Below, one piece after another: positions 38,301 through 44,594 of a DNA stretch of 64,000 nt. Location: positions 744,001 through 808,000 of the forward strand of contig QPMI01000005.1 in NCBI GenBank assembly GCA_004431415.1. The letters run 5' to 3'. The translations under genes were made by a program, and so were the position numbers. This DNA comes from Cyanophora paradoxa CCMP329. Its lineage: Eukaryota; Plantae; Glaucophyta. Position 1 is the first letter of the stretch. Each line of letters opens with the position of its first letter. Under the pieces are notes generated by a model. The model worked only from the letters and a program-made list of their open reading frames with translations, did not search any database and was not told the origin of the DNA.

Positions 38301-41300
38301 AGGGAAGCACTAGAATCGATTCCTGATCTAACATAAAGAAGGCCCAGGGCTTGCTCACCAGGGCGGCGATCTCGGGGCGGGGGTGGAGGACGCTAGATTC
38401 ACTTCAGGCAAGATTAGGTTCCCTCCCTCCCTCCCTGTTAGGTTCTCCTGGTCTAAAAATAGCTCACCAGGGCGGCGATCTCGGGGCGGGGGTGGAGGAC
38501 GCTAGATTCACTTCAGGCAAGATTAGGTTCCCTCCCTCCCTCCCTATTAGGTTCTCCTGGTCTAAAAATAGCTCACCAGGGCGGCGATCTCGGGGCGGGG
38601 GTGGAGGACGCTAGATTCACTTCAGGCAAGATTAGGTTCCCTCCCTCCCTCCCTATTAGGTTCTCCTGGTCTAAAAATAGCTCACCAGGGCGGCGATCTC
38701 GGGGCGGGGGTGGAGGACGCTAGATTCACTTCAGGCAAGATTAGGTTCCCTCCCTCCCTCCCTATTAGGTTCTCCTGGTCTAAAAATAGCTCACCAGGGC
38801 GGCGATCTCGGGGCGGGGGTGGAGGACCAGGGCGCGGGCGCCGCGGAACTCGCGGGGTCGGCCGGGCCCCAGCGCCGCCTCCTCGATCCCCGACGGCCGC
38901 GGCGTCGTCGGCAGGCTGCGCTCGCGCGCGCAGGCACATCGGTCAGATATAGAGGCGCCTGACCAGGGCCGGGGCTCGGCTCGGCTCGGCGCCCGCTTCG
39001 AGTCCGATCTCATCTAATTCTAACCTATCCCTTGACCGAGGCGCCTGACCGAGGCGCCTAATTCTAATCTAATTCATCTAAGTCCGAGGCGCCTGACCAG
39101 GGCCGGGGCTCGGTTCGGTGCCCGCTACTATCTATTTCGATCCCATCTAATTCCAATCTATCCCTTGGGTCCTCCGCGCCGCACCTGGCGGCGAAGGAGG
39201 CGAGCTCCTCGCCGCTCGGGAGGCCGCACTTCGCCGTGAACCAGAAGGCGCTGCGGCGGGGGCGGGGGCGAGGGCGGGGGCACGCCGGGCGAGGTCGGAC
39301 CAGAAAAGGAGAGGGGCGAAGGGGGGGGGGGGGGGGGGGGCGGGGCGGACCTGCCGGCGCCCGGGGTGGAGTCGACGCCGATGGAGCCGTCCATCAGCGC
39401 CGCCAGCTCCTTCGAGATCGCCAGCTGCGCGGTCGAGGGGGAGGAGGAGAATGTCAGAGGGGAATGGATAGATAGGTGGGCGGCAGGTGCTCTTTGACTA
39501 ATCTGAGCTGGATATAGTAAAGGAGGCTCTCAGTCGACCGCGCGCCCCACGGGCGCAGCTGAGCCCCCCGGGGGGCCCGCGGCGAGATCGCGAGCTGCGC
39601 CCAGATGTCTCTCACTGTCGAGCACTCTAAATCTAGGGCTTCTATGTAATCTTCTGTCTTTATTATCATCATCAAACTCTTCAATATCAAGGGAGAGGGA
39701 TAGGTAAGCGGCGGGCGGGCGCCGGGGAGCCGTCTGCTCTATAATTCTCTCAGAGGGAGATAGGTGGGCGGCGGGCGCTGGAAAAGAACTGGTGGTTCCG
39801 AGATGGATGTCAGTGCAATGATTCTGGGCCTCTAGATTCTATGCCGTTGAAGACGTTTCTTACCATCGAGCTATATGTCGAATTTTTATGCCTTAGTATC
39901 AAGCTCTCTCTATAAAAAATCTTATCGCGTCTGGCGCACCCCGAGGCCGGTGCCCTGGAACTTGCGCGTGCTGCTCGTGTCCACCTGCGAGAAGCGGCGG
40001 AAAAGCTTCTCCTTCTCCTCGCTGCAGGGCGCCGCGTGAGGCGGGGGGGGGAAGGTAAGGGAGGGGTACGCACTCGCGGATGCCGAGGCCCGTGTCCCGT
40101 ACGACGAACTTGATCGTCACGTACTTGCGCCGCTCGTCCGTGGTGTTCCTGCAGGCACGCGGGCGGGCGGGCGGGCGGGGCGGTCGGTCAGGGCCGCCAG
40201 CGAGCGACGGGGGGACGAGGGCTCTAGCTCCAGCCCTAGCCTAGGGACCCGTTCTTCTAGAGCCGGGCGGGCGACGCGGGGCTTGCGGCCGAGGGGCGCA
40301 CCAGAAGATGCTGGCGACGCTGCGGCGCAACTAGACTAGGACCCCAAAGGAAGATTTAGATCTAGATCTCGACCCTCTAGACCAAGGGAGGACGCGGCGG
40401 GGCGCACCAGAAGATGCTGGCGACGCGGGGCGTCTGGTTCTCCGAGGGCGTCGGCGCCGGCTCCTCCCCCGCCGGCACCTGCGCGCCCCGGTTCAGGAAT
40501 GGCGGGAGAATAGCTGGAGTCCCGCCCCGCCCTTCTCAGTTTCCTCCAGTTCATAATCTCTCCGATATAAGGCGCCTTCCCAGCCTTCTGGCTTCTCTAA
40601 CTTCTTACTTCGCCTTTCTGGCTTCTTTAACTTCTCCAGCCGCTCGAAAAGGACGCGAGAGAGCGGGTGAGCGCACGACGGAGACGGAGACGGAGACGAA
40701 GCCGGTCTTCGTGAACTTGACCCCGTTCGCTGCGCGGGGCGCGTGAGGGGGAGGGCGCGGGGGAGGGAGCCGGGGCGCCGCGCAGCGGGCGTGGGGGAGG
40801 GGGCCGGGGCGGGGGCGGGGGCGGAGTCATGTTTAGGGAGCTAGCTCGTGAGAGGCGCGGCCGGCGCGGGCGCGGGGGACGGGAGAGCCGAGTCCAGCTC
40901 TGGCGGGGCGGGGCAAGGCGGGGCGCGCAAAGGAAGTTGAGGAGGGTCTGCCCACTAAAAGTTCGGGATCGACCAAAAATTCGGGATCGGCCAAAAGTTC
41001 GGGATCGAAGGAAGATATCGGGGACGGGCGGGGCGGGGCGGGGCGGGGCGCACAGAGGAAGTTGAGGAGGATCTGCCCGAGCCTGCGTCGCGGGGGAGGA
41101 AAAGCGGTCGGGCCGGCGAGGTCAGGTCAGCAGGGAGGGGCAGCAGGCCAGGGCCGGCCAGAGGGTGGGTGCTTTGAGGCGGATCGGGCGGGGCGGGCGG
41201 GGCGGGGCGGGCGGAGCGGGCCGCTTAGGGCGGGCCCAAAACCTGGCTTCTAATCTCTAGTTTCTAGTCCAAAGTCAGACGCCAGTCCTTCTCTCTGGGC

Positions 41301-44300
41301 GGTGCGGGGGGGGCGGGGGGGCGGGCGGACCGCTTGGGGTCGGCGTAGACGACGGGCGGGCAGTCCTTCGACGCGATCGAGAGCAGGTCTGCGGCGAGGC
41401 GCGCCCGCCCGGCGCGTCCAAGTCAGCCCGGCCCCGGCCCCGTCGTGCGACCATTTCTTTCCCGTTGGCAGGCGCGAGCGAGGCGGTCGCAAAGGGCGCA
41501 CCGAGGCCCTTCTCGCAGCTCTGCATGACCTGCGTGCAGGGAAAGGGTCGGTCGGCCGCGGATCTGGATCCGGACGGTGGAGGAAAGACCAGGCGCGACG
41601 TGTGTGGGCGGAGGATGCCTAGGCCAGGGGCCGGGGGCCGGGGCGGAGGCCTAGGCCTAGGCCTAGGTCTAGGCCTAGGAGGAGCGGGAGGGGGCCTAGG
41701 AGGAGGAGGCCTAGGCTAGGGGCGGGTCGGGGCGGGGCCGGGGCCGGGGGCGCACGACGCAGTCGAGGATGTTGGCGATCATGCGGTCGAGGCAAAAGAC
41801 CTCCGGCTGCAGCTCCAGCTTCCCCGCCTCGATCTGAGAGAGGAAAAGTTCGACGAAAAGTTCGGGATCGAAGAAAAGTTCGGGATCGAAGGGAGAGCGG
41901 GATCGAAAAAGTTCTGGAGGTGGGAAGGGTGGGGGGGGGGGGGGGGGGGTGGGGGGGGGGGGGGGGACCGGACTTGGAGAAGTCGAGGACGTCGTTGACG
42001 ATGGCCATCAGGCTCGTCCCGCAGCTGCCGCCAGGCAGCTGTCAGCCAAAGAAACCCGGGGGGCCGAAGGGAGGGGGCCGGCTGACCTGTGGACGATGGT
42101 CGCGTACTCGGCCTGGTCTGCGTCTGCAGGGCGCCGGCGCCGGTAAGCGGCGCGCCCTCTGGACGAAAGGCGCGCCCGCGAGGTGCGCGCATTTCTTTCT
42201 GCTCTCGAAAGACGTCGCCACTTCTAGAACGGAAGCTCGCCTAGCTAGAGCCCCCGCCACGCCCGCGATGGACCTAGTTCCCTCCTAGGCCCCCAGACAA
42301 GGCGCGTCCGTCCGTACGGCTCGAGGCTCATGATCAGGCTCCAGCGGCGCCGCGCGCACCGAGGTCCGTCTCGAGCAGGAGCTGGCTCATGCCGATGATC
42401 CCGTTCAGCGGCTGCGGCCCCCGCGCGTGAGCGGCGGGGGGGCGCGGGCGGGCGTGAAGAGGCACCGTGCGGATCTCTACGGGGGTCGGTGGGAGAGAGA
42501 GGCGCGAGAAGAGTAAGAAGATGCAAGAGCAAAAGGCCAAACAAAGAAAAGGCGGCCGGCCGCGAACCCTGCGGACAGAGGAGAGTAAGTGCGCGATCGA
42601 TCATAGCTCGCGCGACACAAAGAGGCGCACGTGGGAAATGTTGGCGAGCTGTGAATCGCGGCGGAAAGGGACGAAGCGAACTCGTCAGCCGAAACCGACA
42701 GGCAGACAAACAAGCAATCACAACAAGAACAATCTATGATGCTAACTGCAATTACAAGGGGGCGGATTATATGATATATAATGCTGTCTTATGTAATGCA
42801 GATCACGAATGCTGTATAAAAAGAGGGCGGACGAGCGGGGAGGGGCGGACGAAGGAGCGCTCGGCGGGCTATATTATCTATGATGCTATGTTATCTATAA
42901 TGCTGAATCTATAATGCTATATCTATAATGCTATATAAGGGCGGGCGGGGCGGGGCGGGGCGGACGAAGGAGCGCTTGGCGGCGTTGGAGGCCTGCGCCT
43001 CGCGCATCGAGGCCTGCACCGCCGCCTCCTGCTCCTTCGTCCGCGTCCTGCGGGGCGGGGAAGGGAGGCCCTGTCCGTCAGCCAAGCAAGACGCAAGATC
43101 TAGAGAACGGAGATCCTTGTAGCACAGGTTCGGCTGCGCTAAACGGCCCCAGGTCCATAGCATAGCGGCGTGGGAGCTAATGGGTCGCGCGCCAGCCAAA
43201 GACGAAGACGAGGAAGAGGAGGAGGAACGAGCGGGCTCCGCCGGAAGCCTATGCGTCTAACAGTCCGGACTGTTCCGGGGGCCTTTCAGCATCGACTAAA
43301 AGTTCAGGATCGAAGAAAGATATCGGGTGCGGGAAGAGGAAGGGCCCGGGCGCACAGGTCGCGGACGATGCCGGTGAACATCTTGCGGCCGTTCACGTGG
43401 AACTCGTTCATCGCCACCTGCGAAAAGAGGCTTCGATTGGGGATCGACTTAAAGGTCGGGATCGACGAAAAATTCGGGATCGACTCAAGGTTTCTTAAAG
43501 ATCCTAGCTTTTATCTAGCTCAAAGATCCTTTAAGATCCTAGCTTATGAGCTCGTTCATCGCCACCTGCGCCCGAGGCGGCGCGGTCGGCACACGTCCGA
43601 CGCGGCCCCGGCGGGGCGCCGCGAGGCGCCGCGCAAGCTACAGGCTCTGCATCCGTCTACGAGCATCGCCCAAGGCGGAGGCGTGGGCATCGTCTCACGA
43701 GCATCGCTCAAGGTTCCTTTCGGATTCTAGCCCCTTATTCGTCATATTCTTCTGTTTAGGGGGCAGACCTCGATGGGAGAGAGCTCGCCATTGGCGCGGC
43801 GTCTTTGGCTTCTAGCTTCACGATTCTAGCTTTAATTTAAGATCCTTTAAGATCCTAGCTTTAATTTAAGTTAAGATCGGACCTTTAAGATAGGATTTTC
43901 AAAGATCCTAGCTTTAAGATCTTTTAAGCTCCCTTTATATTCGGACCTCGATGGGGAAGAGCTCGCCGTCGGCGCGGCGGCCGACGAGCTCGCGGGAGGA
44001 GCCCGCGAGCGCCTCGAGGCGCGTCCCCTCGAGCCCCGGGACCAGCGCCGAGAGCGGGCGCCCCAGGATGCCCTGCGCCGCCGTCAGAACTTTTCGTCGA
44101 TCCCGAACTTTTGGTCGATCCCGAACTTCTAAGACGGCCAGGAGACGCGGGCAGCGAAGATGGCGGGGCGGGCGTCTAAATGGCGGCCAGAGGAGTCCGA
44201 GGTCAGAATACGCGAACAAACTTACGGGTCACGCAAGCTCGTGCAGTCAACGAGCGGGCGTCTTAATTAAACGACAGGCGGGGCATTCCGCGGAGGCGGG

Positions 44301-44594
44301 CGGCCCCCGGAGAGCGCGCGGCGCATTTTAAGGGCGGGGGCGTGCGCTTGCCTTGATGGCGATGCCGAAGGTGCGCTCGACGGCGGCGTTGGCCTGCGAG
44401 GCGACGTAGAAGTTCGGGATCGACGGAAAGTTCGGGATCGACGGAAAGTTCGGGATCGAAGGAAGGGCCGCCCCCGCACCTGCGAGACGACGTAGAAGGC
44501 GTCCGCCGTGATAATGCAGTCTGCGGGGGCGCGGAGGGGGCTTTGAGTTGGACGCTCGACGTTTGGTTCGAGGGGCTCGCGATCGTGTCATCTC

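Follow-up and report, generated by a model that had tools for sequence, protein, structure and literature searches.

The H-box of a large PAS-containing hybrid histidine kinase gene in Cyanophora paradoxa CCMP329 reads as split over exons of 18, 1 and 11 nucleotides (nt), followed by a 52-nt exon that carries the PLNG motif. We consider it probable that the lone G at position 42568 is a genuine one-nucleotide exon of this gene and that the introns on either side of it are removed by sequential intron-definition splicing. The gene lies on the minus strand of a 64,000-nt stretch of contig QPMI01000005.1 (assembly GCA_004431415.1, forward-strand positions 744,001 to 808,000); this whole stretch is referred to below as the window, its two strands together amount to 128 kb, and all coordinates are window-based. 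An earlier sequence-only reading had put forward this architecture, and its exon coordinates, lengths and splice dinucleotides (42648-42631, 42568, 42476-42466 and 42411-42360) are exactly as we find them.

A single splice path yields the canonical H-box

Across the H-box the minus strand reads cacAG/CTCGCCAACATTTCCCAC/GTGCGC..(62 nt)..tccgcAG/G/GTTCGC..(91 nt)..cccgtAG/AGATCCGCACG/GTGCCT..(54 nt)..ccgcAG/CCGCTGAAC, where slashes mark splice boundaries. All three introns inside the block, of 62, 91 and 54 nt, have GT-AG ends, and the lone G is directly flanked by AG and GT (ccgcAG/G/GTTCGC at 42570-42562). The features of the region, in the order of transcription, are as follows.

42966..43047, minus strand: exon A, coiled-coil just before the H-box (...TRTKEQEAAVQASMREAQASNAAKRSF, peptide end ...AAKRSF); donor GTCCGC at 42965; RNA contig pieces of runs X18 and X19 end exactly at 42966
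42649..42965, minus strand: intron from exon A to the 18-nt exon, containing AT-rich 15-nt repeats and, at 94%, 33 nt copied from the end of exon A and its donor; RNA depth zero over 42673-42839
42631..42648, minus strand: 18-nt exon CTCGCCAACATTTCCCAC, LANISH, phospho-acceptor His encoded by CAC; acceptor cacAG, donor GTGCGC (8.2 bits)
42569..42630, minus strand: intron 1, 62 nt, GTGCGC...CCGCAG; CTTAC at 42589-42585, its A 18 nt before the AG, then a pyrimidine tract; acceptor 10.4 bits
42568, minus strand: lone G, proposed 1-nt exon and first base of the Glu codon G/AG beside the phospho-His; on the only LANISHEIRT path; base confirmed by two DNA contig sets, presence in the mRNA probable
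42477..42567, minus strand: intron 2, 91 nt, GTTCGC...CCCGTAG; CTTAC at 42517-42513, 38 nt before the AG; donor 2.1 bits, acceptor 2.3 bits
42466..42476, minus strand: 11-nt exon AGATCCGCACG, (E)IRT; flanks gtAG and GTGCCT
42412..42465, minus strand: intron 3, 54 nt, GTGCCT...CCGCAG; branch motif CTCAC 17 nt before the AG
42360..42411, minus strand: 52-nt exon PLNGIIGMSQLLLETDL plus G; donor GTGCGC; weak HisKA match; depth of both RNA runs in the bin 42339-42505

We listed all the ways of joining GT/GC donors to AG acceptors that lead from 42648 to 42411 with the frame kept open. Among all these paths only one yields LANISHEIRT (LANISHEIRT-PLNG), and it runs through the lone G, as the sequence-only reading had held in saying that the microexons with this base assemble a HisKA H-box. 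The same reading had stated that without the base the product would be frameshifted or lose its Glu, and both outcomes are indeed recovered: when the donor at 42630 is paired with the first AG (42478-77), the result is CAC-AGA-TCC-GCA-CGC-CGC-TGA, which is frameshifted and meets a stop after six codons, and splicing to the second AG (gtagAG/ATC) gives LANISH-IRT, which is in frame with the Glu gone. A GC donor at 42626 that would lead to LANISH-VQIRT was rejected, its sequence GCCTCT scoring -8.8 bits.

The exons 3' of the H-box carry on the DHp and ATPase domain with DADQAEYATIVHRS, SCGTSLMAIVNDVLDFSK, IEAGKLELQPEVF..., RLGQILLNFL and SNGVKFTKTGFVSV. The HisKA H-box pattern h-x-x-h-S-H-[ED]-[ILM]-[RK]-[TN]-P-L is readable in the DNA, and so are the segments ...EYATIVHRS..., ...AIVNDVLDFSK and IEAGKLEL farther 3'. 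In an exon-by-exon Pfam search the HisKA and HATPase_c matches were only weak because the exon pieces are so short; for HisKA (PF00512) the PLNG exon alone matched, over profile positions 15-31 with E=0.11.

The genomic sequence around the lone G

We weighed the reading that the true genome carries an extra G, either at the donor (CACG/GTGCGC) or at the acceptor (TAG/GAGATCC), through an error or a rare allele, which would leave an ordinary 153-nt intron. The assembly is probably long-read based, PacBio sequencing with Illumina correction being described for C. paradoxa (PMC6704402), and another junction of the same gene, the DFSK junction described below, lies beside long poly-C runs and looks like such an indel. 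However, two sets of short-read DNA contigs, X1 (from 2024) and X15 (from 2019), match the window over the H-box and contain no indel rows: X1 record 6 (41979-42963) and X15 record 13 (42007-42969) each show 0 other letters and 0 gaps, so that their shared agreement with the window spans 42007-42963, the whole H-box region, although one of the two runs is possibly the assembly's own source. The single genomic G, which the sequence-only reading had wanted checked against a base dropped in assembly, is thus upheld, and we regard an extra genomic G as very improbable.

Splice signals on both sides of the G

Splice sites in this gene follow a recognisable pattern. The donor consensus GT[GC]CGC is present in 12/15 annotated donors, the annotated acceptors are CAG in 15/15 cases and mostly [CGT]GCAG, and the branch motif CTNAY precedes 11/14 true acceptors by 12-45 nt. 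The donor pattern resembles that of Emiliania huxleyi, where GC-AG introns dominate. Position weight matrices were built from 15 donors and 15 acceptors of this gene with the tested sites left out. The donor at 42630 scores 8.2 bits. For the internal acceptor, just 5' of G 42568, the score is 10.4 bits, within a range of -3.9 to 12.4 for the true acceptors (leave-one-out, n=15) and at a level that only 3/234 decoy AGs reach; like most true acceptors of the gene, it ends in CGCAG. The two introns flanking the lone G, of 62 and 91 nt, are of workable size, and the same gene contains a 54-nt intron. The 62-nt intron should be removed by ordinary rules, since it offers the first branch site and the first AG past the donor at 42630, and these are among the best in the gene. 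After its removal, G/GTTCGC...TAG/AGATCC is the only productive continuation.

The sequence-only reading had described both flanking introns as normal in size, pyrimidine tracts and GT-AG ends, and both do carry the signals usual in this gene. The two sites of intron 2, its donor GTTCGC (2.1 bits) and its TAG acceptor (2.3 bits), are weak yet inside the range of true sites: 5/15 true donors score 2.7 bits or less.

The arrangement around the G is also rare. The pattern AG-G-GTNCGC occurs 3 times in 128 kb (both strands), which corresponds to roughly 0.4% per given 154-nt interval, and no 1-nt AG-N-G[TC] configuration in the 28-kb gene other than 42568 combines a branch motif with two site scores that each exceed 2 bits. 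The other AG-N-G[TC] sites in the gene were set aside as ordinary exon ends or poor acceptors.

Several observations weigh against a genuine one-nucleotide exon. The presence of the G in the mRNA is something we infer, and an in-frame form without the G exists, the one that lacks the Glu. The internal donor GTTCGC reaches only 2.1 bits, a score matched by 53/639 decoys, and has a T at +3 that is found in 0/15 training donors. The intron 2 acceptor is a TAG of 2.3 bits, as against CAG in 15/15 reference acceptors. The same gene has a second one-G-short junction (41973/41833), which hints at 1-nt indels, either allelic or of the assembly. Finally, the internal signals could partly be a by-product of an old duplication common to both introns.

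The main competitor is that the lone G goes unused and that one intron runs from the donor at 42630 to the AGs at 42478-42475, the gene copy being inactive, decaying or atypical. The transcripts would then be the frameshifted CAC/AGATCC form, with its stop after six codons, or one for a LANISH-IRT-PLNG kinase without the Glu. Both of these paths have GT..AG ends, the signals of intron 2 are weak, and with a second one-G-short junction at 41973/41833 that has no canonical solution, the copy may carry 1-nt deletions. However, the spliceosome would have to skip the first and far stronger 3' site with its own branch motif (10.4 vs 2.3 and 1.2 bits), and the Glu-less path needs a GAG acceptor 2 nt past a TAG. 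Moreover, neither the kinase motifs nor the other 15 examined junctions show damage, the gene gives a spliced transcript, and the chance of AG-G-GTNCGC falling just where a G is needed is <1%. We judge an unused G unlikely, but we keep a sizeable place for it because this gene copy could carry real frameshifts.

RNA coverage and spliced junctions

Two runs from two studies, X18 and X19, are guessed to be RNA and show RNA-like behaviour in depth. Their depth lies over exons only and is zero in the wholly intronic bins 42673-42839, 43675-43841 and 40502-40668. RNA contigs of both studies match the window up to exactly the exon-A donor at 42966 and then continue for 68-83 letters that are unlike the adjacent intron. 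RNA depth is zero across 42506-42672 and positive in 42339-42505; therefore the transcript is spliced from exon A over the microexons to the PLNG exon without retention.

Elsewhere in the gene, five junctions are supported by RNA: 44351/44071, 43945/43415, 43355/43046, the junction entering 40474, and 40407/40147. All of them (5/5) fit G[TC]..AG, allowing 1-4 nt of alignment ambiguity, and one is GC-AG; because of this we conclude that the splicing machinery of the gene is conventional.

These junctions also bear on a reading in which a single 153-nt non-canonical intron (GT..TA or, equivalently, TG..AG) gives the same CAC-G-AGATCC mRNA. The retained G would then be the first or last base of the 153-nt stretch and not 42568. 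The genome reads GTA-GAG-ATC-CGC-ACG in frame at the 3' end, so the Glu codon would be contiguous with IRT if the cut preceded the G of the AG; the finished mRNA is identical under both models, and the same one-base offset would explain the DFSK junction. Against this, every junction of the gene with RNA support can be read as G[TC]..AG, no spliceosomal mechanism is known for such an offset, and the strong internal acceptor, branch motif and donor would be left unexplained. We give this reading hardly any credence.

A proposed order of events

For the lone G as a one-nucleotide exon, we propose that the two short introns (62 and 91 nt) would each be recognised by intron definition. Their splice signals overlap, as the AG of intron 1 occupies -3/-2 of the intron 2 donor; the two would therefore not be engaged at once and would be removed one after the other. 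If intron 1 left first, the junction ...CCCACG/GTTCGC would present a normal donor context; if intron 2 left first, ...ccgcAG/GAGATCC would present a normal acceptor context. Either order would lead to CAC-GAG-ATC-CGC-ACG and hence to the canonical H-box S-H-E-I-R-T-P-L-N-G. Such a scheme would combine intron definition with a recursive route, as has been proposed for APC11 (PMC4674806).

The sequence-only reading had further suggested that skipping the exon might act as an on/off switch for the kinase. This was pure inference and gained no support from our analysis; a skip would mean a frameshift and an early stop.

A second one-G-short junction and variation among gene copies

The junction from ...GACTTCTCCAAG (41973) to TCCGGTCCCC..., with the acceptor ctctcAG/ATCGAG (41833), is likewise one G short: at DFSK/IEAGK (41833-41975, minus strand), AA/GTCCGG...ctctcAG/ATC leaves the Lys codon without its G. 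At 41973/41833, DFSK-IEAGK is restored neither by any GT/GC..AG path nor by a microexon. This intron contains two long poly-C runs, lacks a CTNAY branch motif and scores poorly, and its donor side lies outside the short-read contig coverage. In three runs, every DNA or RNA unitig stops at precisely 41834, which suggests a variant at 41835, for example a haplotype cagGATCGAG. The junction may reflect a 1-nt indel, allelic or of the assembly; alternatively, the repeat units may have become exonic and add ~29 amino acids in frame, or the gene copy could have real frameshifts.

Sequence variation is also seen at other positions of the gene. At exon A site 43011 three synonymous forms (G, A and C) are present in one RNA run, and different pairs of them in two DNA runs. 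Further variable positions are 43002, 41795 and 41804, and a variant of the exon 41756-41834 differs from it at 7 of 79 nt. Several haplotypes or copies of the gene are present and expressed.

Comparison with known systems

The sequence-only reading had called one-nucleotide exons very rare. Rare they are, but they have already been described (PMC4674806, PMC12940212), and the present case, if real, would join those of Arabidopsis APC11 and Fusarium CYP621A. For Arabidopsis thaliana APC11, proof of the single-nucleotide exon A333 came from cDNA sequencing and from minigenes in which the base was substituted (Guo and Liu 2015, PMC4674806). Both genes have one base between AG and GT, an upstream branch point, a base needed for the frame, a rechecked genomic sequence and a proposed sequential (intron-definition plus recursive-like) removal of two introns. 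They differ in that the base is proven in the APC11 mRNA and would be expected in the mRNA here, in its identity (A there, G here), and in intron length (~330 and 90 nt vs 62 and 91 nt here). Unlike in APC11, the base in C. paradoxa falls in the codon of a catalytic motif and stands among further exons of 18 and 11 nt.

The one-nucleotide exon of the Fusarium cytochrome P450 CYP621A is supported by 20 orthologues and Sequence Read Archive (SRA) reads (Nelson and Syed 2026, PMC12940212). There, as here, the exon was deduced from a conserved motif (PKG there, SHE here) and an exon phase that could not be assembled otherwise, and in both cases the base is part of a codon within a strongly conserved motif. 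Whereas CYP621A is backed by orthologues and reads, the case here is proposed from the genomic sequence, with RNA contigs spliced across the region. Surveys of microexons in plants list exons down to 1-15 nt in length.

Zero-nucleotide recursive splice sites (ratchet points) are known from long introns of Drosophila and vertebrates. They share with the present arrangement an acceptor set against a donor inside a would-be single intron, stepwise removal and regeneration of a 5' site. However, no base of a ratchet point is kept in the mRNA, and these sites serve the removal of very long introns, whereas one base would stay here and the introns are shorter than 100 nt; at 42568 one base stands between the AG and the GT.

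Fungal [D1,2]/[A2,3] spliceosomal twin introns (stwintrons) have been described together with the 1-nt intron shift (Fekete et al. 2017, PMC5587772). These also consist of two canonical introns with boundaries one G apart, in a stretch of conserved peptide and with consecutive excision, and they are relevant to intron positions sliding by one base. In a stwintron, however, the shared G belongs to the intron signals and is removed, whereas here the two introns are separate and the G between them would be kept in the mRNA. Whichever intron is removed first, a canonical intron is left with the G exonic, and losing the G shifts the frame.

If cDNA confirms the exon, it would be one of very few one-nucleotide exons known and, going by the published cases we found, the first outside land plants and fungi. 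It would place a 1-nt exon in a catalytic codon, that of the Glu beside the phospho-accepting His, among exons of 18 and 11 nt in an alga. Automatic annotation would break or truncate such a gene, which matters for annotating genomes that are densely packed with short introns. A pair of introns separated by one base in the same gene would also provide direct material for the old question of 1-nt shifts in intron position.

A possible origin by tandem duplication

Introns 1 and 2 share two collinear blocks, TCTTTGTnTnGC and CTTACTCTyCTC, which are 76 and 72 nt apart (42536-42547 / 42612-42623 and 42506-42517 / 42578-42589, respectively). No further copy of the branch-site block CTTACTCT is present on either strand of the window. 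When introns 1 and 2 are aligned globally, the score is modestly above that of shuffled sequences, with 18/500 shuffles reaching it. We speculate that these similarities stem from an old tandem duplication of ~73 nt inside one ancestral H-box intron, which could have provided the additional splice signals.

A further and tentative extension, which we think possible though distinctly less likely than not, is that the H-box captures a 1-nt intron shift in progress. The ~73-nt duplication, arising from a widespread copying of splice boundaries into introns, would have supplied a second branch site, acceptor and donor, leaving a phase 0 and a phase 1 intron with one exonic G between them. If this were true, many exons of 1-4 nt could have arisen in the genome by the same route, and boundary duplication would be a general route to ultra-short exons and intron sliding.

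Gene context and database searches

The host gene spans 28 kb and contains very many short introns. The G+C content of the window is 52-76%. The published C. paradoxa genome, a ~100-Mb long-read assembly, has 67.6% G+C, 9.2 introns per gene and a mean intron of 86 bp, and the composition and intron sizes of the window fit these figures.

The stop-free stretch that contains exon A gave no candidate in a word-based search of proteins. The PAS exon found only distant multi-PAS proteins (identity <=60%) in a search of representative proteins; therefore the gene's own product, annotated or transcript-derived, is not in those libraries. In metagenome contigs, the exact 30-nt pattern of a single exon (exon E) was not found, and a protein-pattern scan gave no confirmed match. 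An exact look-up of a bacterial-style open reading frame over the H-box region returned no record.

Repeats in the introns of the kinase gene

Echoes of splice junctions are common in the gene: the adjacent intron holds an imperfect copy either of the end of an exon with its donor or of an acceptor with the first part of its exon. They include 42835-42867 vs 42950-42982 (33 nt, 94%) and 40296-40323 vs 40400-40425, as well as sites at 43545-43570 and 43770-43800.

A CCCCG-rich motif stands directly 3' of many donors (GT[GC]CGCCCCGCCCC...), at ~40159-40180, 40796-40824, 41186-41215, 41749 and 42943-42966. It has thousands of copies in the genome, and DNA contig depth in its bins is 5,000-43,000 vs ~80 elsewhere.

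Short tandem arrays of an 18-nt unit (TCGATCCCGAACTTTTCG and variants) are found in many introns of the kinase gene, at 41840-41916, 40960-41010, 43300-43330, 43440-43500, 44090-44130 and 44413-44470. The last of these adjoins an RNA-supported exon start (piece from 44412) with no visible AG acceptor, and may be partly exonic. Finally, six copies of an AT-rich 15-nt repeat, TATCTATAATGCTAT, lie at 42731-42934 in an otherwise GC-rich intron.

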